Assembly (NCBI GenBank): GCA_038496445.1
Contig: JALMLS010000420.1
Span: 62,001-126,000 of the forward strand
DNA: 64,000 nt
Origin: Trichosphaerium sp. ATCC 40318
Lineage: Eukaryota > Protista > Tubulinea
Direction of reading: 5' to 3'
Shown here: one piece after another, positions 3,070 to 60,948 of the stretch
Position numbering within the stretch: the first letter of the stretch is position 1
Layout: the number at the start of each line of letters is the position of its first letter
The notes under the pieces: model-generated
Seen by the model: only the letters and a program-made list of their open reading frames with translations
Database searches by the model: none
What the model was told of the DNA's origin: nothing
Position numbers and translations under genes: made by a program

Positions 3070-6000
3070 ATGCTCAGCGGTATCGCTGCGAACATACTTT
3101 CAAAGTATTTGGGAGATTACATTGAAGGTAAAGTTAAACCAAATTTGAGTGTAGACCTAAAATTATTGCCAAGGGTTGGACAAAGACAACCTCAAATTCA
3201 GTGTTGGATCTGGAAATGTTGTACTCAATAATTTGAAACTTAAGAAGACGGCACTCGATGGCATAGAGCTTCCTGTGGTAATAAAAGAAGGTGCGCACCA
3301 GCGTCAATTCGGCGTTTGAAGCTTGCCAAAACAGACTTTATGAAGCGGTAGTGTTAAAACGCTTGTAGGTTTCCTAGGGAAGTTAGAATTGCGTGTTCCA
3401 TGGCAATCTCTTGGTAGTAAACCGACAATTGTTAGAGTTGACCAAGTGTACCTGGTTGTAAGCCCAAAACCCAAGTCAGCGGTAAGTAATCGTTTCTCGT
3501 ATGGTTGGAAAAGTTTTCTCGTTTTGTGGCATCCAACCAACAACAATTGACATTTTTTTGCAAAGAACTCCGCCGAGGCGGAAGCCAAGCGAGAGCAATT
3601 CACGAAACAGCGCGCTTTACAATTGGCTGAGTTAATTGGATTGGACAAACCCGATAAAGGTGATTAAACAGTTTTTTCCTACCATTTGCACGACGTTGTC
3701 ACGCCTCACGTCTCACGTGTATTTTGTAGAGGACAAAAAAAAAGCGGACAAGGATAAAACTAAGAAGGATGATTCCTTTGTTGGAAGATTAGTGATGAAG
3801 GTGATAGATAATTTGCAGATCTTTGTTGATAGAGTGCACATCAGGTACGTTTAGTACAATAAACACGTGCTTGGGTTTTTTTTTATTTTGCCAAACCGCT
3901 CACTTCCTGGGGACCACATAGATATGAAGACGATGTATCCATACCAGGGCATCCATTCGTGTTTGGTATAACGCTGGAACACTTACACGCTCAGTCTGCC
4001 GATGATAAGTGGGAGCCAACATTCCTCCAAGTCGGTAACGACATAACGCACAAGGTACTCTATTCATTTTGTGTGAACCGAACCAAAAAAAAAAACCAAG
4101 CTAACATTATTCAAAGCTCGTTACATTGAAGAGTTTGTCTTTGTACTGGAACACTGGCAAGAACAATGCCAAGTTCCTGAAGTACAAGGATATTAATCAA
4201 ATGAAGCAGTTGATGGCACATCTGATACAAAAGGAAGAAGGCCCTAAACTTGAAAATCAATTTATTTTACACCCAATATCCGGTTTTATGAAGGTCAGTT
4301 TTCGCGTGGCGCTCATGTTTCTAACGTTTAAGTAGGCCACGCTCGATCGTGGTGAACTAAATCTTGACAGACCTCGCTTGGGCCTTCAAATGGAGCTTGA
4401 TAGCGTTGGTTTGGCGTTTGGTCGCGAGCAATACTTGTCCGCTATGAAGGCTGCCGATTTTTTTTCTTTGTACACCAAGGGCGTAAAGGTACAAATACCC
4501 AACTAATGAATCACTCACAGGAGATCTTATTTTTTTTTTTTGCAGTATCTAAAGTATCGCCCTGAACAAGGCGTACGTCCGTCTGAGGATCCAAAGGCCT
4601 GGTGGAAGTTTGCTACTGGTACCGATATCGTTGTCTTTTGAGCCCAGCAGAAGTTGTTGGTACTAATACGCATACACTAGATGCCGTTCTGAATGACGTC
4701 CGTAAGAAGCGTAGACAATGGCAGTGGGAATACATCAAATTGCGCAAAACACAAAGACTCAAGTACATAGAGGTCTTCAAAGAGCGCCAACTTAAAGGAC
4801 CAGATAAGGTTCGTGTACAGTGCTAACCAACAGTTTTTTTTTGAAAAAAACCAGCCTGCCATTGATGCTAATATGCCATAGATGTCCTCAACAAGCAAGG
4901 AAGTTATGGTGCAACTAGAAGAGATGCTATCCTATGAAGAGATATTATTGTATCGTAAGCTAGCCAATGCTGCTGTTCAAATACATAAAGAGAAGCAGAA
5001 GAACACTTCATACTTCAGTTCTTGGTTTGGCTCTTCAGAAAAGGTTCGTTTTTTTTTAATACATTGACCAAAAATACCCAAACAAGGCCTGTGTGGAGGC
5101 TGTATAACTAAATGCCCAATATAGAAAAAAAGTCCAGAAGAGGTTGCTGCAGAGAAGGAAAAGGCCATGAAGGAGCTATACGCCACCATAGACTATTCCA
5201 ACGAAAAAGCAGAAAAGGCAGTTTCAGAATTTCCTCGATTTGTACGTTGTCAAGTCCTCCTCCGCGTTTTGCGCTTCTCACTTTTTGTCAGTACGTTCAA
5301 ACACAAGTAGACGTTTTAATCAAACGCGGGTCGTTTGAGATGAGAGAAGATAGCACCAACACGGTTATACTAGAAGCGTTTTTCAATAACCTGTGCACTG
5401 CCATAAAAATAAGACCTGATTCTCAATCTGTACTTGATTTGCTCATCTATAATAACCATCTAATACTTGTCTTAGATAGAAACGCGCCTCGCAAGGGTAG
5501 AAGTGGTTGAATATCACACTTTGGTACGGTTATACTTGTGCAAATAATTATTAATTTGTTACAAACAATAATTGATTGCTATTGTGTAGAAAGGAAAGAA
5601 ACTGAGTGTAGTGACGCCAGATCTCGGCCTCACCACAACTGAAGCAGACTTTATGTCGTTCACACTAGATTTAAAACCAATTGATGTTGAGGAGCATCTA
5701 GACGTTCGATTCAGGATGAAGTCTCACTCTCTAGACATATACTTCTCTAGAGCCGTCATTGACAAAGTTGGTAAGTGGCGCCAGATGGCATTTAATTTGG
5801 TATCTCTGTCAACTTATTGTGATTAGTCGATTTCTTCGTATTACCTTCCGATTCATCGCTTGTTGACGACTTGGCAACTGCTGCGACAACGGGAGTAGAT
5901 TCGTTGACCAAACAAGCGCAGGCTCAACTGAAATACGCCGTCAAGAACAGGACAGCTATTGATATCAATTTGAATATCCAAGTACGTGCTTGAATACTCG

Positions 6001-9000
6001 ACACAAATGCTTACGCTACGCCACTAGGCGCCAACTTTGATTATCCCAGAAAACTACACTAATCCTTCTTGTCACTGTCTGATTATCGATCTTGGTCATA
6101 TCAGCTTTTCGTCAGACTTGGCCACACGATCTAAATCAGTAAGTTTAGAACACCCTCCCTTGCAATATAACCTCACTCTACTATTTAGATTCTAGCAGAT
6201 GACGATGGTGATGGAGCACCAACGATCACTGAGGACTTCTTTTACGATACATACAACCTCGATCTCACAAAGATTTACGCTGTAGTTGTTAAAGATACAG
6301 GCTCTGGCTGGAAGTCACTACTTGTACGTTGTGTTCTCGCAGCGTTTTGTGGATTCAATGCCTAAAACCGCTTCTCTTTTAGACAAATGAGCACACAGAA
6401 AAATATCAAATTATCGAAAAATTTGACATTGGCCTTGTAATGAAGGTCTTGAGTGGTGTCCAGACTAACCAACTCTCCAAAGTAAAGTGCGTACATCCAT
6501 GTCCAGCTGATTAACGTGTCCTGACCTCTATTTGCGTAGAGTTGCGGGAAGTCTACCAAAGTTGTCTGTCTCTGTGACCAAGCAAAAAACTGAAGGGTTA
6601 ATGGCCATTGCAATGTCTGTTTCCAAACCTTCTGAGATAAAACCAGCATCTCCTGTCAAGGCCAAGAAGGTGTCCCTTAGTAGGACAACTACACCTATCA
6701 ATACGCCTACACTTTCGAGTACACCTCCAAAGGGAGGCGATGGCGTAAAAACGGCGAAGGACTCTGCCAAAGCCAAGCTTAACGAATTGAAGCGCAATGC
6801 TGAAGTCACATTCGTTATTGAGTATCTTGCCGTACAAGTGCAAGAGGCGGAGGTCCTAGGCGGCCCACAACAACCGCTTATTGGTGTTGTTCTACAATCT
6901 CTGTCAACTAATCTGTGGAATACGAACCACTACAACAAAGTGGATTTGGCACTACAGAAGTTTTACGTCGAAGATCATGTCATGAAAGGTGGCAACGACC
7001 AGAATTTTCTCATCACATCCGGTGCCAGCGATAAGGATCTGATTGACATCAATTATCTTGGCGTTCTCAAAGTACAGTTTCCTTTATCTAGACTCACATC
7101 TAACGCTCCAAACAGGACTCACCAGATTACGCCCACCTAGATCACAAGATTGATGTTGATTTTGGTAAGCTTTTTATAATGGTCATCATACTTGAGCCAC
7201 TCTGACTCGGCCTTGAGGTTCCCTTGATATATGCGTCAGTAGACCTACAGTTCTTAAACTCATGAAGTACGGACTGGAGCTTGCGCAAGCACTTGCACCA
7301 CAGGAACAACCTAGCAAGGGAGGTTCTAAAGCTATCGAACAAAAGGTAGAAGCATTGGATGAAGGCGAACAAGGTGCTGTGTTACAATATTTGTTGTTGA
7401 GCTTTTTTTGGATTGCTAACCTTTTGTGCAGATCCTGTTCCTGTTCAGACAGAGGAAGAGTTGCTTGAGTTGGCTAAGACAACTTTGGTTGCTCTTACAG
7501 CCCAGCTCGATGCTGTGCGCCTTACTTTGGTGAAGGAAGGAGAACCCATCTTGACAATGGGCCTAACTGGAACCGATATTGACGTCAACATGTCCGCCGA
7601 TAACTCTATGGTGGTTAACGGCTCTATGGGCAACATTAAGATAGCAGGAGTTGACAAGGGGCCATGGCAAAACATGCTAGACTGCAAGGGCGACCAAGTC
7701 CTCAAGTTACGGTATGAAGCTTTCAACAAGATGTCTCCTACATATCCAGGTCATGACATGGCGGGTACGTCTTGGTTAAAGTCATTCTTGGCTATTGTTT
7801 TTGTGTGTTTGTGGCTCATTTATTTATTAATCAGTGAAATTGCGTATGGGATCACTAGTATTCAACTTTCTAAATGCAACCGCTCTTGAACTCGGTGAGT
7901 ACTTTGCTGTATTCAACGAAATGCAAGGTATGGTCACAAAGGCAATTAAAGACGCAGGAAAGGAAAGTTACCAGAACATCAAGGAAGCCCGAAAGGCTGG
8001 AACCAGTGCGTTACAATCTGCTTTTTTGATTTCAAAAAAATCTTGCAATCTCATTTCTTTTTTTTTTGTTGTAGAAATCAAACTTGATGTTGAAGTGGCA
8101 AATCCATACTTGTCGGTACCCACCAGTGCGACATCGGAGGATCGCCTAGTGTTGGATTTGGGATTGATTTCACTTCAGAATGAATTTTCACCAGCAGTAC
8201 GTTCCTAGGTTGTAACACTAGTGTCTCTAGCAAACTCACTCTAAACTTTTGCATAGCACACGGAGGTAGTATTGGATAAATTAGCTGTAAAGATATCATC
8301 ATTATCTCTTATGTGTGTCTACTCTGACTTGAAGAAAGACAAGCTGTTACAAGATTTTGATTTGGGTGTGAGTGTGCATCGTGCGCTCTCTGGCAACGAG
8401 ACACATACCGTCCCAGACATTTCAGTACGCTTTAGGTTTTGTTTGTCCTACGTGGCTAATAGTGTGTGGTGCTAGATCAAAACGGATTTATCTCCTATAA
8501 AATTTGCGTTAAATGAAAACCAACTCAATTTGCTCGCGGGCATTCTTACAGGTAACATGAGTGCCAAACCGGCAAGGGCAGATAAGGGTACGTATTATTA
8601 AAAAAACCCAAGAGTTGCGTGTCGCTGATTAGTGTGCTAGCGGAGCTCAGGGAAATGTCAAACATGAAGGGCGTCATTGCCGCAATTTCCAAAAATGCAG
8701 AACTTCAAAGGGCTGAGCAAGCGCCTAAGGAACCTAAAAAGCCAAAAAAAGAGAAGACCGGTAGTTGGGTACGGATGTGGAGACTTGAGACCTTTCTGTA
8801 TTGTTGACACTGTGCAAAAGGTTGCTACGGCTTTGCGTGCCTCGCTACCAGAGGTGTCTGTGTCACTTTTGAGAGGATCAGGCGTAGATGAGAACGGCAA
8901 CGAAGATGGTATTGCAAATTTTTCATTGAACGGTGCGTATTAATCATTAAACTATTTTTTTTCAAAACCGCAACCTGTTTCTTAACCATTTCCAGGTATG

Positions 9001-12000
9001 GCAACAGACGTTCAAATACTGGGCGACGGCGGTATGGAGGCAAGTGGACAAAGCGGTTAGGCATGGCGTTCTTATATATGTTTCTTAGGTTGGATTCAAA
9101 CTCAAGAGTATGATATTATCCGACGCTAAACTGGATACAAAGAATCGTTACGCTGTAAGTATTTGGCTCATATCTTCTGCGATCCGACTAATCGCCGCAA
9201 ATAGCAATTGGTGAGCCCTATTTTAAAGGGATCCAACGACGAACAAATAACATTGGCTATGGTCACTAAGCCTTCAGGTGACATGGATTTGAAGGTCAAT
9301 GTGGCTAGAATGAGGATATACCTTGTTCCAGAACCGCTTCAGGACATCTATGTACGATCACGACTCGTTTCACCAACTGCGACTTACCCAACCATCAGGT
9401 TCATGCCATGGCGTTACTAGACAAGATGAATGCTGCAACAGCGAGCATGACCAAGGCGAGTGATGCGCAATCGGATAAAGATAAAGCATCCAAGAAATCT
9501 GAAAAACAGGAAAAGACAAAGGAAGACGATGCTTTGGACAAGCCTGAAACTACCATGACCGTACGCAACATTCAAAAATCCCAAAAAACTATAGTTTGGT
9601 GGAAGCACGTGACTAAAGTGTGTAGATTGATTTGACGTTGGGGTCCCCAGAGATTTGTATGATCGAAGACAGCTCCACTTTAGCTACCAAAGCATTGCTT
9701 ACGCGGCTGGGAGACAGTCAAGTAGTGATGGTGCAAACTTCTCATGGTCAACAATCTATAAACGTCACAATCAAGGATTTGCGTGCTTCCAAGTGTATGC
9801 TTTATGCCAAGGTACGCAATCTCATGATTAAAAAAAGCGTATACGCCTTTGACTTATTGAATGCAGGATGGCGAGATGACGGAAGTTGTTGATGTGCTTC
9901 AGCCGTTCGATGTTGCTGTGCTGTTGAAAACCAACGAAGAAAAGAAACAGCTCATTGCTTTGAACATTCAGAAGCCAGTTAATACAATTGTTTCGTACAG
10001 TGATATCACATTTGCCATGCGAGTGCACAAGTCATGGATACCATTTTTAGATGAGCTCTCAAAAAAGAAAGATGGTACAGCCCATTATTGTACAAAAAGT
10101 GGATCGTAACTAAAATGAAAATAGATGCCAAACCAACAGATAACAATCCGGAAACTAAATCCGTTGTTGTTACCAGAAAAGCCATCGACGCTGCACCTGT
10201 AGACAAGGGAAAAGACGAACTGCTTATAGAGCTGATAGATGGCGATAATGATGGTAAAGACGACACTTCACTCGTAGCTTTGGATTCCGATGACGACGAT
10301 AGCGATTTTGAACCTCCAAAGAGCAGACGTATGCTTCACTCCTTGGTTTTTTACAGGTTATTGAGCGTTTTGTGTAGGCAAGAAAGGAAAAGAGGAAGTT
10401 GAGTTGGAAGAAGCCGAGGACAGTGCAGAAGCGAATGATAAGGAGACGCAAGAGGTTAGTAGTTACCTGTTTAATTATAAATGACTGACCTTGGTCTGTT
10501 TTTAAAGCTTGACGTGCAAATAGAAGGTCTTAATTTGAGTTTGATTAATGACAACTATGCTGATGGCTCCTTCTCTGTCCCTGTTGCAAAGATCCTAATC
10601 AATCAAATCGACACTGGCATTACAATGTATGCTGGAGGTAAGATGAAGTTATACACTTCAATTTCGACGTTCTATGTCGATGCCTTCCAGGATGAGCTCG
10701 CAACGTGGGAGCCTATCATTGAACCTTGGAAGCTAGAGATGCAGGTACGGCGATTGGACATTTGGTTTATGATTTGGTGTGTTTATAACAGCGTTCGTGT
10801 AGATGACGCAAGAAAAGGACAAGATGAAACTTCACCTTGTCTCCGAAGAAGTATTAAACATCACGTTTTCCAAGTCATTTATTGACACACTCTATAACTC
10901 AGCAAGTGTACGTAACGTTGTAGTTTAGTGTTATCTTTTACTAAGTGGGTTGCCGAAGATATTGCAAGACGAGGTGAAACAAGTCAAAGCCGATGATTCT
11001 GCCAAAAAGAAAAAGGCTAGCAAGTCGAAAGGCTCTCTTATGCACCCGTTTATCATTGAAAACCGCACTGGCAAACTTGTAAACTTTAGGTGGGACGGAA
11101 GTGCTCCAGAGGTATGTCATTTTTCACCTTCTTGGTTTCTTAGGTGGCTTACATTCTATTTTAGACAGCCGAAGCACTGGCCACAGGTGAGTCGCGACCT
11201 CTTGATGTAAAAGGACCAGGAAGAGGATCTGTATTGACAAAAGTGAACTATCAGCTAGCTGCCACAGTCGATGAAGATCAGTGCGTGTGCCTCCATTATT
11301 ACTATGAATTTTAACAGACCGTTTCTTACCAGAGATGCATCGTTTTGCGAGCTAACCGAACTCATGGTGAACCGAGTGGGTCGTCAGTCGTTTGCTATAT
11401 CGAAGACAGACCCAACAAAGAAAGTGATTGTTGACATCAGACGCGAACAAGGTGTTAAAATTACAACGTTCCGTAGCGACCAAGTTATCTACAACCACAC
11501 AAAATTCGATTTGCAAGTGCAAGTGCGACATCCTAGCACAAAGGAGCAGATCAAACTGCCTGATTTAGCGCCCGGAAAGTACGACAATGTTGCTTCCCCC
11601 TTTACTGGCACAAATGCCGACACGCACTTTGAATCTAACTAACGCATCTAGATGGATCGCTCTCCCACTAGAGCTCATGAAGAGCCGAGAGGAGTTAGAC
11701 ATTTGCATTAGACCATCGCTTTCATACGAATGGTCGACATGGCATCAAAAGTCAGAAAACGATGCAACATACATGCATTGCAAGCACACGAGCGAGAATA
11801 GAATTTGGATGGCACTTGGACACATTGAGGTTGTGCCAATCCCTGGTGGGTCTGACTCTACATTGCACTTGTATGCACCTTATGAATGCTCCAACTTCTT
11901 GTGCATGCCAGTCAACTATCAAGTACGGACAGGACATCCTTTGTTAAAATATTGGCTGTCTTCTAATTGCTCACTCTCTTTTACAGGTTGTTGCTGGCAA

Positions 12001-15000
12001 TGATGATCACGCTGTTGTAGAAGGCACGATAGCACCAGGACAAACCGACCACATTCACATCAAGGAGTCCGTAGAAGAAAAACTTCGCGTTAAGTTGCAA
12101 CTTTCTAACTACAAATGGTACCTCCTCTGCGCACCCAATCGACTGTAATTAACGCAATTGTGCCTATGCAGGAGCAAAGCAACCAAGTTGTTCCCAAGAC
12201 CAACCTTGGAGAGTGAACCCGTATCAATAGCCTTACACGATAAGAACGAACAGAAATTCAAGTTCCAAGCAGAAACCAGACCGTAAGTTCATGTCCACTA
12301 GTCGTTGGTGTGTGCTTATCCTTTCAAGTCCTGTTCCATCTGGCTGCAGGGCAGTTTCTTTATTCTCACGCTATTGGATCACAAACAACACGGGCTTACA
12401 GCTCTTTTATAAAGACGAGAACAGTGATGATATGGCACCTGGGCAAAGTACGTTTCGTTCGATAGAAGCACTCTAGCTCAACCTTTTCTAGCGCCTATAG
12501 ACGCAGACCTTCTGGAGCTGCCGGAAGACCCGAATGCATGGTATACATGTGATGACACGAGAGACACAGACTCGGCACTTGCACGATACATGTATGACGG
12601 CAAAAAACTGTCACTAAAGGCGCAACAATCGGACTGGTCGAAAAAGTACCCTCTGGGTGTTACAAATGCAGGTTTAATAGATGTACAAGAATCACACGAA
12701 GGTTACTTATTCCAGTTTTCTGTATCTGTTAACCCAGCACCTGGCAATGTACGTTATCACTACTTATGTTTTTTTTCTAAATACGAGCCATTTGATTGCT
12801 AATAATATATTGTTTAGTTCTGGCGTACTAGCCTTGTAGACATTGCTCCTGGATTTATAATTGTCAACAAAACGGATGAGACGCTTCAATACAGGCAAAC
12901 TAATTCCAAACTTGCTCCAACTCTGGCTTCTAATGGGCAGATTCCATTCCACTGGCCAAACGCACAATTACCACGAACACTCGAGTTTTCGATTGACGGC
13001 GATGGCAGATGGTATTGTCTTTGTCACTCATGTGCTCATTGACCTTGTATGCTAACGGTAATATAGGTCGTATCCAATGTCAGTCGATGTGGTGACAACG
13101 CATCAGATCAAGATGAGAGCTTTGGACAATCCTGAAGATTTCAAGACAATAGGCGTACGCAATGCAGCCACATAAAAGTAGACACTAACTGTGCTGCTCT
13201 TTTAATAGGTTGTTATTAAACAAGTCAAAAACGTCACATATATTGTTTTGGGAGATGCAGCTGAAGTACCATTCTACCGCATTATCAACAAGTCATCAAA
13301 GAGCATCCGCTTCCGTCAAAAGGTGAGTGTTTGCCCGTGTTTCACACTTTTAAACGAGAATATTAATTGGCTGCGTGTGCTAGGGACAAATGTACACATA
13401 CAAGGTTGAAGGTGGTTCAGAAAAAGATTATTACTGGGATGACCCTGTAGCACCAAAACTCCGCATTGAGGTAGTCTTCGTACAATTAATCACCATTTGT
13501 CTCACGCTTCTCTTAAGGTGAACCTTGCCAATGCAGCTGAGACTGAACGTCCAATGGAAATCAGTGTGGACAAGTTCAAAAAGTACAAACCGTGGAAGGG
13601 ACTTACCATGGAAATCGCTCCTTCAGGGCCTACAAAAGTGCTCATCATAAGAGACAGGCATGCCCGAGCCTTACAGGCTGAGGACATTGAGGCCAAGCTC
13701 GCTGAAACCAATGTACGGATTTAATGTCTCGGCTCTCAATCTCATTCTTTAATGCCTGTAGGTGATGGACATGCGAGCAAGTTTGGCTGGTGTCGCCATC
13801 TCTATTGTTGATGACAAGCCACAAGAAATCGCCTACATTGTACTATCGACAATTCATGCCACTGTGCACACTTCTCAACTCCAACAGCGCGTCGGTTTCA
13901 CTCTAGGTACGTCTGTTCTCCACCAGTTGTAACTACGTTCATATGTGATAACTTTAATCTAGGAGCCTTACAAATAGACAACCAACTGTACTTGACGCCA
14001 TATTCTATAGTCATGTGGCCTGTATTGGGTGATGATAAGGTATACTATTATAAATAATAGTCGGGTACTTGGCCTCATCGCTAACATTAAATTTAGCCAT
14101 TTATGGAATTGACAATGATCAAGAATGCAACATACAAGTCTGTACAATACTTTGATTACTTTGCATTCCAAATGCAAGAACAAGATTTCGAAGTTGATCA
14201 AGTGTTCCTACTTCGCATGCTACACTTTGCTGAAGTGCTTAACCAATACCTAGTCAAAGTACGCCAAGAAACCAGCGAACTACACACCAGTATTTTTGTG
14301 GCTCACTTTATATTTTTTTTCAGTGGCAAGGCGTGGACTACGAACGCGATTTGTTGTCTGGAAAGGGCTTGGGCGTTCCTGAGTTTGCTTTGGGTACAGA
14401 CGTGCAATCAGATTACATGTATTTCGAAGAGTTGCACATTAACCCAATCAAAATCAACCTAAGCTTCCAGACTGTGGCAGCTACTGACCACAGCCACGTC
14501 TCTCCATCAGCTTTGGACAAAGTACTTTCATATGCCGGCACTCTTGCCAATATTGAAGACTGCCCTCTATTGCTACGTGGCTTGTTCTTGAGCAACCCGT
14601 TCGAAACGCAAGAACAGCTTATCAATCGTATAATTGGTCATTATACCACACAAGGTAACCCAAAAACAGTTGTAGGTAGCACAAGTCCCGTATTAACACT
14701 GCGTTTGTTTACAGGGTTATCCCAACTGTACAAGATAGTAGGATCAGCTGATTTCCTTGGTAGTCCGGTATCGCTTGTATCAAACCTGGGTACAGGCGTT
14801 AAGGATTTCTTTTTCGAACCTGCAAAGGGTCTAGTTAAGGGTCCAAAGGAGTTTGGCAAAGGCTTAGCCAAGGGAAGCTCGAGCCTTGCCAAGAAGTCCA
14901 TTTTTGGGATATTTAACACAGCAGAGAAGCTCACGAAGACTGTCGCCAGAGTAGGTGAAACCCTAACTTTCGATGAGGACTACCAAAGACAGCGCGCTAT

Positions 15001-16130
15001 TACGCGAAAGCGTAAAGCTCAACATGTTGGCCAAGGATTAGCGTATGGTGCGATGGACTTGGGTATCGGATTGTACAAGGGTGTAACCGGTGTTGTTGTA
15101 CGTTTTGAACGCCGCCAGTTTGATTTACAGGCACTCTAACGCTGTATCTAGATGGAGCCTATTAAGGGCGGCATGCGTGGCGGTGCTTTAGGTGCTGCCA
15201 AGGGTATCGGTCGCGGAATAGCTGGGTACAATACTGAAAGACGGTCTATTCTAATTTTGACAAAATTTAGGTTGGTGCTCAAACCAACAATTGGTGCTAT
15301 CGATTTCGTTTCTCGTACAGCGGAAGGCATCAAAAATACCACAAAAATTTTTGATCACAACGTCAAGGCTCGCGTGCGACCGCCTCGATACATTACGTAA
15401 GTTACTTTTAAGAGGTAGTTATGTTTAACAAAGATTGTTATTTAGAGAGGAAGGCAGAATTTGTCTTTACGACTTTGACAAATCAGTTGGCCAACAAATT
15501 CTTCACAGCCTCCAGGATGGTGCCTTCAATACACAAGCTTATAGATTCCATTGCTTCTGCACAACCAACGATTGCGTGCTTGCTTCAACGACCATGTTGT
15601 GGCTGTTAACAAAGAACAAGATTGGCGAGCTGGCTTGGAAATCCGAGTGGGGCGTAGCTCTAGAACACATTCGCAATGTCGAAACCAAGGTACAAACAAT
15701 AGCAACGCCTGTGCACTTGAGAAACTAACTTGGTCTTGAAAAAGGGATCACACTTTACGGTAACTGCTAATGACAAGGAATACGACATCAAGTGCTCCAC
15801 AAAGGAGATTGAAAAATTCATTTTGAAGAAGATTTTCTCGCTGACGAACGTACACATGGTCAATGAGGAAGCCAAACGGTACGTCGTTTTTATTACGCGC
15901 GAATGCACAAGCTTATTCGTGCTTTTAGTGAGCAAGTTCGTTTGGAATGGGGCAACGACATTTTTGCGGGAGAAGCTGATGATGAAGACGCCTCTCAGAT
16001 CATCGCCAGACGCGGAAAAGACAAAAGACGGAGGATGAGTTTGACAGACACCGATGAGAACCAACCACTCCTCAGTGATAACAACAAACCAGATGAAGCA
16101 GGTTGTTGTGCTTGTTGCAACATACTCTAA
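3070..16130 (+). CDS. VPS13: VPS13 bulk lipid-transfer protein (many exons)
   Basis: Chorein_N start MLSGIAANILSKYLGDYIE and KVIDNLQIFVDRVHIRYED; WEPIIEPW; C-terminal MYFEELHINPIKINLSF, YKIVGSADFLGSPVSLVSNLGTGVKDFFFEPAKG and RVRPPRYI. Confidence 0.96.
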
Positions 16131-16377
16131 AACTAGCTACAAAAATATAGCATTTTTTAACATCACAAAACCGGTTTTTGGTGGTTTTATTTTTTTTCAC
16201 ATTTACAAAAATACAAAGGTTGATATTAGATCTTCTGGTATTCGTTGCATCCTCGAAACAAGCAATGCAATCCTTTTTTTTTTCTGGTTTTTCAAGTCTC
16301 TGTGATGTTCGTGCTGATTGTAAGCTGTTTTGGCGTTGCAAACATACTTTGCTACTAGAATTTGAGTTTGTTTCTAT

Positions 16378-19300
16378 TTAAATTCTCTTTAACTCTGTTC
16401 GCAACAAACTAAAACTTGGTCGTGATTTGGGGTCTCGATGTACGCAACCTTTAAAAATTCGTCTGAGGTGTGGATTGCAGCTCCTTGGGAGAGGCAACGG
16501 AGCGCTATTGCTTTTAGTTGCAACTCTGGTGAGATGGCGTCCAAGCATCTCCCTGGAGAACTGTTTGAATGGCACTTCTCCCGTTATCATTTCCCAAAGT
16601 ATAATGCCAAACGCATAAACATCTGCCTACAGAACGACGTTAACAAAGTTACGACTGCTCAAGTCACATGCCTTGCGCGTCACATAGACGGAGTTTCGCT
16701 TTCCATATCTAAGACTTTGGTTATTTTTTCTATTGGTGTAGGTTGTGTTAACGTACACTTCATGTGGCAAATGACTTGGTGTCCCTGCAACACTTCGGCG
16801 TATTGTCATGTTGGTATCTCGTCTAGCGGCACCTTGGTGTAGCGTCAATGACAATACATAACCGCAATATTCTACTTTGTACTGAGATGACGTACCAAAA
16901 TCAGCTATTTTTACGCTGTAGCCACCTCTTGGTTGTTTTTGAAGTAGCACATCTATCAGTTTAAGGAAAAGTGGAAGCAAAAAACAGAAAAAAACGAGAA
17001 GAAAAAAAATCCGTCAGATTTGACGTTGTGAGGATACTTGCACTCTTGAGGTCTCGATGCTACAATATCTATTAATTATAGAACTTATTTAAGTTGGAGC
17101 GTGTGCGTACAATAATATGGTATGAGTGTAAATCTGCCATACCCTCTGCAAGTTGCATGAAGATGGATCTGATGCTGCGTGTGCTCCTATCACATTTCAT
17201 TTGATGAATGTACTCGTACAGGGAGTAATCCATGAGTTCCATCACTAGCCAATGAGTTAGCCCGTTAAAAGTTGAGGCAAAGGATGCTGTCACAAAGGTA
17301 CCTATGATGTGTGAATGCCTTGGGAGCATCTCAGTACCACGCCTTTCGTTGTATTTGTGGTAGCAATAGCCGTGAAACTAAAATGAAAATGAGTTAGACG
17401 AAACAGTTGGAAGCCTCGTACGTGAACAACGTTTTCTATTACGCCCGATAATAAACTACGATAGTATTAACACACAATCAGTAACTGCAAGGTATGGGTG
17501 GGTACCTCATCGTGACGAGCTCTGCTTTGAGATCCTCAAACATGACCTTGGATTCAGGAATGTGCTTTGTTGCCACACTGTGCCCATCGTACTTGGTGCT
17601 CCACACTTCACCGTATGACCCTGAACCTATCATGAAGATCAGCAAGTCATTTACACGGGTTTAACAGGTCGCGTACCTATACGTATACGCTTTTTGGAGA
17701 TTTTTGAGTGGTCAACATTGATTATCCAGCTTGTAACAATCAGAAAAGAAGAAACACTCCTACAAAATGAAAAAATAGAGATGTACCTGTCAATCTTGAT
17801 GCCAGCATTTCTAACCAACTTCCACAATACTGGGAGTACACCAGCGTTTAAATACTTTCGCTTGGTTTCATCATCTATGAAGTGGGCATTAGAACAAGGT
17901 TTAATAGCCAAAAACACCTTTTCCACAAGCAATCATCATTTCCTTTACAGCAGCGTTCTTCTCAGCAATGCTATAACGCTCTCCTCTCATCACTCTCATC
18001 ACGTGGTAGAAGCCACTCGATTTCACTAAAGACCGTGAGTAACGTGTAAAGGGAGTGTAGTTTACGTACCGTCTGCGGGCAAAAGTTCAAGGGCAGCACC
18101 ACATCCTTTTCGTTCGAACATTTAGCGTAAAGCAAGAAAAAAACCAGAACAAGGCGTACCCATTCTCCTCAATATGCTTTCTCTGTTTTTAGCTTCAGGG
18201 CTAGCAACTGTTCAAATGTCAGTATGTAGTCTTTTGGTAACAGTTGTAAAGCTTACGTCCTGACGTCATGAGCCTGAAGAGGTTGGATAATTCCTCTTTT
18301 AACTGATTTTTGCGTGTTGTATCCCACAAATTAGCCAGAATGCGGACGTGCGAATCTTTGAATTGCAACCAAATTTGTTTAAAGAAAGTATTGTCAAAGT
18401 CAGCAAAGCCACCGTCTGGTGCGAAATCTTGGCGCGGCATTGTTTTCACCTTAGCCCGGGAGTCCATGCCGGAATTGACTTCCCTATCAACGCTTGGTTC
18501 TTTTTTTAAAGGCGGGCCATCATAGCTACTGGAACGTAGTCTACCAGCTACAAAAAATGTTACATTGGCCTCTCATTGTGGGTCACTACATGTCGACTTC
18601 CACTTAAAACATTTCCGCCTCTGTATGGGCTTTACATGCGTATAAGAGCCAAGTTCGACTATTTGTGAGCGTTGTGAGCGAGAGGCAAAAAAGCCGAATA
18701 TTGTGTCATTTAGAGCACCTTTTTACAAAGAAAACTCGCACAGTTTTCGGCTTTTTGCCTCTCGCTCCTAAAACGCATACAAATAGTGGAACTTGGCTCT
18801 TATACGCATGTAAAGCCCATACAGAGGCGGAAATGTTTTAAGTGGAAGTCGACATACACTGTGACGGAGGAGTAATCAGCCACTTGAGAGCCACAACTGC
18901 GTAAAGCTGTGCTTTGCGTTTAGTAGATTGAATGATACGGGTTAGAAGTGTAACGACGTCTCTATAGCGAGCCATTTGCTGCCTTGCCTAGATTATAAAT
19001 TAAGCTCAGCCGCGAGCAACCACAAGTGAAAAGTACCCTTGAATTTTGCACTACATAGCTTATTATTCTTATCACTTGATACTCAAGAAGGTTGTTGGCG
19101 GTGTGATCCTATTAAATGTATTAGTAATGGTATTGCTAGATTTTGAACTAACAAGATACATCAGAAGAACATTTGATCTCATTGCCAAAAAGTCTTTCAT
19201 GCACTCCTTCCTCATGCATAAGTTCACAACTTTAAACACCTAATAACCCAATTTTAGTCTAAGTATACAGCACAGCATCTCGTACGGCTATTTTGAGTTT

Positions 19301-21591
19301 GACATCAGAATTGGCTTGCTCTATGTTTCGCTCTGTAAAATCAAGTATAATATCCATGCTCTGAGGATATTTGATTATGGTTTGCGCCAGATTCTTTGTT
19401 TTGACTTGACAACACGAGTTATAACATGGTTTTAATTATCTCACGTACCACCTATAAATACTCGTATCGTCTCAGCTGCGTATAGTGCGCATCGCTTATT
19501 TCTCCTGTCGCCCATGAGAATGACGAGGGGCGTAATAATACCTTCCTCGATTATCAAGTGTTTTAATTTGACTATCACGTGTTAGCTTGTCGCAATCTTC
19601 CCTGATGTTTATTACCATCTCTAGTTGCAATCTTTGATAAGATTTTCATGGACAAAAGCGTGGATTTAACATTCCTGTGTTCCACCAATATTTTAATTAC
19701 AGCGCTGATGCCGCCTAGAAACTTTTAAGAAACAGATTAAATAAAACACAGTGCATACCTTTTTCTGCAAAAGCCATCATTTCCTTAACTTCCTGTTAGT
19801 ATACACTATCTATGACTCGTATTTATGGTACCTTACTATCTACAGCCAAACGTTAGCGGTAAAGGTAAGACATATGGGTTGCGTACCAGCAATATTTTTC
19901 TTTGCGTGTTCCAATGCTTTTGTCAAATTTGCATCTACCACCGATTAGTACACGTGAAAAAAGTGCTGATTTGCCAATGTGCACGTGCTTTTGTATTGCC
20001 TTAACGTGGATATGAGGGCACTAGTTGAGGTTTCATTTGTTATGTGCATTCTAGGCATTGGTGATACAAGTTGTTCGCGAGAGTTGTTTGCATGCGTTAC
20101 CTAATCACGTGATTAACAACCAAGTACTTTGCAATAAATTGTTTACAGTATTTCTACGATTGATGTTCTGTCTAGTCGGCCTTGATCGTGTAGGGCGACC
20201 ACTACGTGTGCTCTTCCTTCTAGATGATCTTCTCTGCTGTCGAACGTTCCTGTCTTTCAAAGGGTTCCCTCCGTGCGTTTGGCGTCGATTCAGCTTTTTG
20301 ACATTAGATTTTAGCATTTTCACCACAGTTGACTGTCTATTTACCTTTGGCTCTGGCGAGCGTTGTTCCCCGAAGAGATTTCGTATTTGCTGTAGCGGAA
20401 TGTCATCACAAAAAAATAAATAGTTATGGGAAGTACCTCTGTTCTTTGAGAACTGCTGCTTGTCAAAGTCGTCGCTGGGTCTTTGAATGTGTCAATAAAT
20501 AAGGAACTTATCAAAGCTATTCGGAAGTACCGTCATCAACGTCTGAACCAAGTGGAATAGATGCAGTGCTCATCTGAAAGAGAATTGAATTATCAAACTT
20601 GGCATCCTTAGATTAAGTTAAAAACAGATTTCTTCAGTTTTTTTTTAGAAGGTCTTGCCCCTGTTTTGTTTCTAAGCAAAGCGGCTTTGTGGGTGCACTC
20701 CAACGCCTTCGGGTAATTGCCAAGCAATTTATATGCTAAACCTATAAAAAATGTGAGCTACAATTGGGTATGGAACTGGGAATACCTTTGTTGTAGTAAG
20801 CATCACGATAAAACGCATCAATGTCCAGGGCTTTATCAAAACAGGCTATTGCCCTTTAAGAATAGTTAGGATATTAATTAGCTTGTTTACCACTTACTCA
20901 GATACTTGTCCTAGGCCGCAATATGCTATAGAATGAAGGTAAGTATTTTCGATTGTTTGGCATTGAATGTTAATTATTGATTCAATGCGAACGCACTTAC
21001 CATTTCCCATATTATTCCAGGCACTCTTGTACGTGGGGTCTAGTTTTATAGCCTCTTTGTAACATTCAATTGCCTATCCTTTATTACTTAGTCTGTAAAG
21101 GAGTAAAGTGTGAACTAACCGCCATGAACTTGCGTTGCCTGCCTAGAGTGATACCTTTGTTATTCCAAACAGCTTTCTTTTACAAAGTTGTTAGCGTGTT
21201 TTTAATTCAACAAGGAGGAACCTGGGCTGGCTCTAAGTGCAAAGTGCGGTTAAAGCAACGAATGGCGTCCTCATGACGACCCAACCAATATAAACTGATT
21301 CCCTATGACTAATCACAATCACAAGTGGACGTTTGTGCAGTACCTTCCATGACCATGCCAAATGATTGTTTGGGTTTAGATTTATCGCCTTTTTTTTACA
21401 TTATTGAGTTTTTAAACCAACTAGCGCTATGTTGTTTATCGTGCCTTGTCAAATAGTTCAATAGCTTGATCATAATTTCCTGGGGTAATAGGATCGTTTT
21501 AGTCACGTGGTGAAGGAATGATTTTATTAGAGGCCAAATAAATAGTACCTTGCGCGTATGTACTCACTCCCTGTGAAAATTCATTGGCCAT
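16378..21591 (-). CDS. TPR + ARM-like repeat + C-terminal TKL-type protein kinase (single multi-exon gene model)
   Basis: N-terminal TPRs (GNYDQAIELFDK, HEDAIRCFNRTLHLEP); ARM-like helices (IIEEGIITPLVILMG, YLNAGVLPVLWKLV); kinase motifs IGSGSYGEVW, HRDLKSA, KIADFG, DVYAFGIILWEMITGEVPF. The halves join in frame across intron 18586-18857 and a 35-nt intron. Start is approximate. Confidence 0.75.
18586..18857 (-). repeat. 272-nt intron consisting of a long inverted repeat (arms about 18590-18705 and 18739-18855)
   Basis: 18590-18656 is the exact reverse complement of 18789-18855 (67 bp). About 50 bp more pair imperfectly around a loop of about 33 nt. On the minus strand it is flanked by GT(ATGT) and (GT)AG. 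Confidence 0.9.
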
Positions 21592-60103: not shown

Positions 60104-60870
60104 ATGGTTTTTGGCTTCATAGTTTCCACGCTTGACACAACCCCAACCGTTCTCCTGTCATCATTCTACACTAAAGAAGGTAACGACGGGAAACAAAATG
60201 CGAGGTAATTGCTTTACTTTTGAGCTATTATTTATAACAACTAACCAATCCGAAGGATACAAGCGATATTCAACAGATTACGCGATACAGCAGCGTTTCA
60301 GCATGTGTGTAAACGTGCTTACGCATCTTCAACCAACTTTAATACAAACGATGTGTAAGACGTTTTGAACGTTAACAAACCATCTGACGCTTATAGAAGA
60401 CAACGTAGTAGTATGGTAGATGGCGTTTTTTGTATTCCAGTCGGAAAATACTTCCAACAAGCCAAAGTGGTCATGTGGAGACAGATAAACAAGTAAGAGT
60501 GCCCGCATTGTTACCTCACCATAGCATTAATAACCTTCAACAACAGTTTGGCATACACAATTATCTGTGAGATGGATGAAAACAGGATGCTTGCACAAAA
60601 CTTTTTGACAGTGTTCCCAAGTGTTGTTAATGAACACAACAAGAATCAAACGTCTGCCGGACAAGGCTCGGATGTACGCGAGACCTTTTTTTTTTTTTTT
60701 TTTTTTTCAAAGTTTGGAAGTTTGTTAATGGCGGTTTGTAGTACCTCATAAAACCTGAAGAGGTTCTTGTATTGCTACATCAGTACCTTCCAAATGGGCA
60801 GTTACTTGTTATTACACATGCTTATTCACGGCATTTGAGAAAAGAGGCTGATAGCATGCTGTTAAAATAA
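60104..60870 (+). CDS. AP5S1: AP-5 complex subunit sigma-1
   Basis: MVFGFIVSTL..; GVFCI..KVVMWRQ..AYTIICEMDENRMLAQNFL; KPEEVLVLLHQYLPNGQLLVI matches the AP5S1 pattern. Confidence 0.8.
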
Positions 60871-60948
60871 TAAACTTTTGTATTTTGAAAAAAAAACAAG
60901 AAAGGGGAACCACTGGTTAGACGAAATGTAGCTGTGTTATTTATTTTA

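Follow-up and report, generated by a model that had tools for sequence, protein, structure and literature searches.

Nearly all introns here are about 50 nt long, so a 266-nt insert in one of them should be harmful; how, then, does an intron of an ARM-repeat/protein-kinase gene come to hold a near-perfect palindrome of that size, and how could the gene tolerate it? The gene lies on the minus strand of a 64-kb stretch of DNA from a marine amoeba (the window, by which we always mean the whole stretch). An earlier note on this DNA had proposed that the hairpin fills a 272-nt intron (18586-18857) from one splice site to the other and is followed by a 22-nt micro-exon (LTHNERPI, 18564-18585) and a 35-nt intron (18529-18563), and had suggested a mirtron or a MITE/introner as its nature. 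We think it probable, if only modestly so, that a 266-bp fold-back or MITE-like palindrome was inserted in a pre-existing intron of about 42-44 nt, is spliced out whole, and is tolerated by looping out. On this reading the locus is an inflated ordinary intron and not an established small-RNA gene.

Intron boundaries in RNA contigs

Contigs of four public sequencing runs, chosen for having words in common with the gene, were compared with it over 16300-20300. Two of them, X2 and X3, are evidently RNA-derived, since their contigs skip fourteen minus-strand segments with GT..AG ends. One X3 contig (record 9; 426 nt, with 2 differences in 291 nt) spans three junctions; in one of these 18547 follows immediately on 18858, with 49 nt upstream and 291 nt downstream of this joint and no letters between the two sides, the contig positions being contiguous. 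The intron is therefore 18548-18857 (Table 1), its junction being given by one RNA contig only, from a 99%-identical strain. The donor GT named in the earlier note (18857-18856) is indeed the one in use, but its acceptor AG at 18587-18586 is not: the acceptor in use is the AG behind the T-run at 18549-18548, 38 nt farther downstream. The predicted junction 18857^18586 is not the one made by the only crossing contig, which also lacks the micro-exon and the 35-nt intron and so rules out that gene model; the 35-nt intron would in any case be shorter than every verified intron in the gene. Across the splice, PPSQ/SGRLRSSSYDGPPLKK is in frame, and reading continues without a stop for 476 codons, into the kinase domain. 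Splicing to the AG at 18586 alone would bring translation to an end after 8 codons. Full intron retention reads Cys-Met-Ser-Thr-Ser-Thr and then a TAA stop, which agrees with the earlier statement that retention meets a TAA within the arm (six codons, then stop), and a kinase-less isoform made in this way is possible on paper. At 310 nt, about six times the usual, the intron is also several times the typical length, as had been noted.

Table 1. Positions of the palindrome, the intron and the adjoining exons in the window
Feature	Positions	Strand	Remarks
Near-palindromic element (fold-back or MITE-like), non-coding	18590-18855	.	266 nt; inverted-repeat search, folds, self-alignment
5' arm in gene sense, 67 nt	18789-18855	-	Perfect complement of 18590-18656
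3' arm in gene sense, 67 nt	18590-18656	-	Perfect
Inner part, imperfectly paired (mismatches, indels)	18657-18788	-	Loop of about 33 nt at about 18706-18738
Spliced intron, GT..AG, phase 1	18548-18857	-	310 nt; joint 18547/18858 in X3 contig
5' splice site GTATGT	18852-18857	-	GT outside palindrome; ATGT is the palindrome's first 4 nt
Second GT right after palindrome	18588-18589	-	Possible 2-nt target-site duplication or start of old 5' splice site (GTAGTG)
Single-stranded tail, 42 nt	18548-18589	-	Branch-like GTAAC 18559-18563, T-run, acceptor AG 18549-18548
Upstream exon, ends ..LKWLITPPSQ	18858-18987	-	RNA contig
Downstream exon, starts SGRLRSSSYDGPPLKK	18257-18547	-	Linker preceding kinase domain; RNA contig

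On the minus strand the order is exon ..CCG TCA CAG T, then GT, the 266-nt near-palindrome (18855 to 18590), and GTAG TGACC.., and the palindrome meets the 5' splice site only, not both splice sites. The mirtron argument fails here because it needed both hairpin ends to be splice sites and the acceptor lies elsewhere; with the acceptor at its actual place, the flush-ended geometry with a 2-nt AG overhang is not found. Nested, stwintron-like splicing was considered and rejected, since without the 272 nt no GT donor remains for the outer intron. An inner intron starting with GTCGAC is conceivable, and nothing supports it.

Elsewhere in the gene, the open frame shifts between the X3 contigs covering 19284-19397 and 19471-19572, and at least one further intron must therefore lie at 19398-19470, outside all contigs. 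One X2 contig joins 17111 to 16440, a 670-nt skip (16441-17110, minus strand) with non-canonical GT..TA ends, which would take out the catalytic core of the kinase and change the reading frame; it may reflect a wrongly joined contig or an unusual isoform. The marine-metagenome run X7 and some X3 contigs are unspliced on the kinase gene, at 95-99% identity, and within introns they show small insertions and a deletion of 17 nt (17764-17780 and 17385). Related strains are present in the sea, and intron lengths differ among them.

The palindrome and the search for relatives

An inverted-repeat search gave arms of 95 nt (18590-18684 and 18761-18855) that are 92% complementary and, within the element, two further inner pairs enclosing the loop. 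When the element was aligned with its own reverse complement, 67/67 outer pairs were intact and the mismatches and small indels were confined to the inner 130 nt or so. These results confirm the perfect 67-bp stem of the earlier note and the further imperfect pairing around a loop of about 33 nt. A fold of the 272-nt RNA likewise bore the hairpin out, at -195 kcal/mol compared with -64 +/- 4.8 for 200 shuffles (z = -27.5), and the element as single-stranded DNA reached -127 kcal/mol (z = -26); the palindromic structure is far beyond chance. In the fold predicted with the exon flanks included, the stem begins at intron position +2/+3 and runs to 42 nt before the acceptor. The exon bases GTCAC (18862-18866) can pair with GTGAC (18581-18585), which would extend the predicted stem over the donor by 5 bp; this pairing is probably due to chance. 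A longer inverted repeat taking in exon CACAGTG was also considered, but its two sides need indels to align and no target-site duplication follows it, and we treated it as chance.

Whole-window scans found one strong inverted repeat in the 64 kb, the element itself. Apart from it, the window has just one inverted repeat of any size, which is imperfect, low-complexity and rich in T-runs and A-runs and lies at 60692-60903, with 36-nt arms that are 78% complementary and lie 140 nt apart. The element has stop codons in every frame, and a protein database search with its longest ORF (58 aa) gave no relative in the length range that the search allows. Terminal inverted repeats, small size and the lack of coding capacity are traits of MITEs and fold-back elements, and the inserted piece is probably a small mobile or fold-back element.

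No second copy was found in the window by pattern search or BLASTN; by BLASTN the arms match nothing else there, and neither resembles its flanks. The 22-nt terminus had no match in the JGI metagenomes, nor did the terminus match viral contigs. At the borders, a target-site duplication could be GT/GT only (AT/AT if the ends are drawn 2 nt inward), a match with a chance of 1 in 16, and no direct repeat borders the whole 310-nt unit. A gapped palindrome pattern searched in prokaryotic genomes (gap 200-230 nt, as against 242 in the element) returned one palindrome in a Prevotella MAG, which shares only the 12-nt ends and was dismissed as chance. That palindrome (contig CAAGFF010000140.1, about 300-665) is perfect over more than 360 nt, is centred near 480 and has the end of an ORF inside it; it resembles an assembly artefact from inverted duplication or an element with hairpin ends, and is unrelated to the element in the window.

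Searches with the host gene gave no comparison locus. A metagenome scan with the 96-aa adjacent exon was blank, as was a search with it of the protein database in the permitted length range, and exact-product look-ups of the gene were blank as well; neither an orthologous locus nor an empty site was found in the metagenome, product and protein searches, and the window holds no paralogue of the kinase gene for a comparison of intron positions. The best match in a search with a VPS13 exon is only 59% identical, and the contig that bears it holds an intronless, non-syntenic VPS13; the host genome is therefore apparently absent from the protein libraries. The VPS13 gene of the window (3789-16130, plus strand, about 12.3 kb) has introns making up at most about 15% of the locus by length. 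Its closest library relative, 58% identical in the C-terminal exon, is a 3517-aa protein encoded with no introns on a 188-kb metagenome contig.

Origin of the long intron

The gene's other 13 verified introns measure 43-57 nt, and most begin with GTAC. Subtracting the palindrome from the long intron (310 - 266) leaves 44 nt, or 42 nt should the two GTs that flank it be a duplication; the 44 nt fall within the norm, the stem between the donor and the branch region being a predicted one. A motif NT[AG]A[CT] with its A 10-16 nt before the AG occurs in 10 of the other 13 introns, and the tail of the long intron has GTAAC, in which the A stands 12 nt ahead of the AG. Judged by its anatomy, the non-palindromic remainder is a complete ordinary intron of the gene, with its own branch-like motif and acceptor.

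In the account that we favour, the palindrome would have entered directly behind the donor GT, where its opening ATGT completes a usable 5' splice site, GTATGT. The 42-nt tail would still hold the branch site, T-run and acceptor of the old intron, the 310 nt leaving as one intron, and the second GT after the palindrome (GTAGTG) may be the displaced original donor. Donor positions +3 to +6 sit in the stem, and we infer that U1 reaches and binds the donor during transcription, when the donor has just left the polymerase and the 3' arm is not yet made. Once the second arm has been transcribed, a stem of about 120 bp would zip up and loop out about 260 nt, and the looping would leave a donor-branch distance like that of the normal 43-57-nt introns. 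Small RNAs from the excised hairpin, if any, would be a by-product. Precedents exist for both parts of this account: in long yeast introns, stems between the donor and the branch site cut the effective distance (PMC12350175), and intronic inverted-repeat hairpin elements occur in Amoebophrya (PMC7789003) and in Hypoxylaceae fungi (PMC8469720). Because the 67 outer pairs are all intact, the insertion would be recent, and the imperfect, asymmetric centre would be a built-in feature of the element, since decay would spread evenly along the arms. Some observations speak against the same account. The 2-nt GT repeat is at best a weak sign of a target-site duplication; no second copy was found in the window, in the JGI metagenomes, in viral contigs or, by way of the element's ORF, in the protein database; and the case for a pre-existing intron is drawn from the anatomy of the remainder, no empty site or orthologue having been found. 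The junction, moreover, comes from a contig of a 99%-identical strain and the palindrome from the assembly.

The same features can be read as those of an introner, that is, of a 310-nt unit of palindrome and tail that landed in an exon and created the intron, bringing or co-opting its splice sites. The unit carries terminal inverted repeats, the donor is built partly from the element's end, the exon junction ..CAGT/CTGG.. is spliced precisely and in frame, and introners are common in marine protists (PMC9860276, PMC12130899). We nevertheless consider this origin unlikely, because without the palindrome the intron is already complete and normal in size, with a branch-like motif at the usual place; in addition, the borders of the 310-nt unit are without a direct repeat, no more than 266 of its 310 nt belong to the palindrome, and the lack of a further copy in the window, the JGI metagenomes and the viral contigs, and of a relative of the element's ORF in the protein database, speaks against an introner too. 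Of the suggestion of a MITE or introner, the anatomy agrees best with an inverted-repeat element that is spliced out as intron; that the element created the intron is not favoured.

The single copy across the window, the JGI metagenomes and the viral contigs would suit an origin without any mobile element, in which the intron was once longer, broke, and was mended by fold-back priming that duplicated an arm in inverted orientation. The perfect outer arms are compatible with such a history, and the flanking 5-bp GTCAC/GTGAC pairing could be a trace of microhomology. Fold-back repair, however, yields a perfect palindrome with a short spacer, but here the inner 130 nt are imperfect and the outer 67 perfect, a pattern more readily explained by structure built into an element than by decay; it would also require a prior intron of about 180 nt, atypical for the gene. 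The arms' lack of likeness to neighbouring DNA argues against fold-back repair and a fold-back assembly artefact alike. We regard local formation of the palindrome as improbable.

Could the excised hairpin be a source of small RNAs? The 3' tail would then be trimmed and the stem diced, as in a 3'-tailed mirtron or an hpRNA giving endo-siRNAs, with element copies or a target gene being silenced. The hairpin starts at the donor, with a tail running to the acceptor as in mirtrons and 3'-tailed mirtrons (PMC4513878, PMC10853799), and Dicer would have an ideal substrate in the 67-bp perfect duplex. It measures 266 nt, however, with a stem of about 120 bp, and is not of pre-miRNA size (about 55-100 nt); two tested features of a conventional mirtron, the flush 3' end and the hairpin size, fail here. 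The branch point fixes where the hairpin of a 3'-tailed mirtron ends (PMC4513878); in this intron that end is not set by the acceptor nor, apparently, by the branch site, the only well-placed branch-like motif, GTAAC, lying about 26 nt beyond the hairpin. No target with extended complementarity was found in the window, Rfam matched miRNA-precursor models to the hairpin sub-threshold only, as expected for any long hairpin, and the literature searched holds no report of mirtrons in Amoebozoa. By analogy the hairpin would resemble, at most, a 3'-tailed mirtron or a long-hairpin siRNA source, and we hold a role as a small-RNA source to be distinctly improbable.

That the palindrome was introduced by a chimeric fold-back read is very improbable: it is known from the assembly alone, none of the contigs of the four public runs lying on 18578-18845, but such a gap is expected where short-read contigs normally break at repeats of this kind, fold-back artefacts copy adjacent sequence and neither arm resembles its flanks, the centre is imperfect and asymmetric, and the insert lies exactly inside an intron with its splice signals intact.

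Known systems and wider meaning

Insertion of a ready-made element in an existing intron, the origin preferred here, has parallels in several systems and matches none of them throughout. Like MITEs and fold-back elements found in introns, the palindrome is small and non-coding, has long terminal inverted repeats, can form an RNA hairpin and is removed with the host intron; unlike them, it is known from a single copy, has a flanking repeat of at most 2 nt, and sits directly at the donor, with the element's end forming part of the 5' splice site. The introners of Micromonas, Aureococcus, dinoflagellates and Amoebophrya (PMC9860276, PMC12130899, PMC7789003) also have an inverted-repeat end that supplies a splice site, a hairpin that brings the intron ends together and a marine protist host, but the remainder of the present intron is complete and normal, which suggests insertion into an existing intron. 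The internally symmetrical introns and stwintrons of Hypoxylaceae (PMC8469720) share with it terminal inverted repeats (45-55 nt in theirs), a possible double-stranded intron RNA and the lack of a clear target-site duplication; they differ in having many similar sister introns, whole-intron symmetry and nested donors, whereas the present intron is a single copy with an asymmetric tail of 42 nt and lacks a working nested donor. The zipper stems of Saccharomyces cerevisiae (PMC12350175), likewise in an organism with mostly short introns, shorten the effective distance between donor and branch site, but those stems are short and evolved in situ, and the stem of about 120 bp considered here would have arrived ready-made.

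As a single locus, the intron would be a tidy case of a short-intron genome absorbing a sixfold intron expansion, in which a self-complementary insert rebuilds the donor; as such it is ordinary, and it becomes moderately interesting if it is one instance of a possible genome-wide rule. Such a rule might be that the spliceosome of this marine amoeba accepts no more than about 45-55 nt of unpaired intron, that insertions survive in introns only as near-perfect fold-backs flush with the donor, that a class of hairpins of about 240-330 nt makes up most long introns, and that the excised hairpins feed Dicer/Argonaute. Taken as a whole this is speculative, and we think it unlikely; if true, it would be a protist counterpart of tailed mirtrons and hpRNAs, coupled to structure-based control of intron length. 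Should long introns prove to be usually hairpins across the genome, the organism would offer a natural system in which to ask whether RNA structure sets effective intron length under intron definition, and whether spliced-out transposon hairpins are a route into RNAi outside animals and plants.
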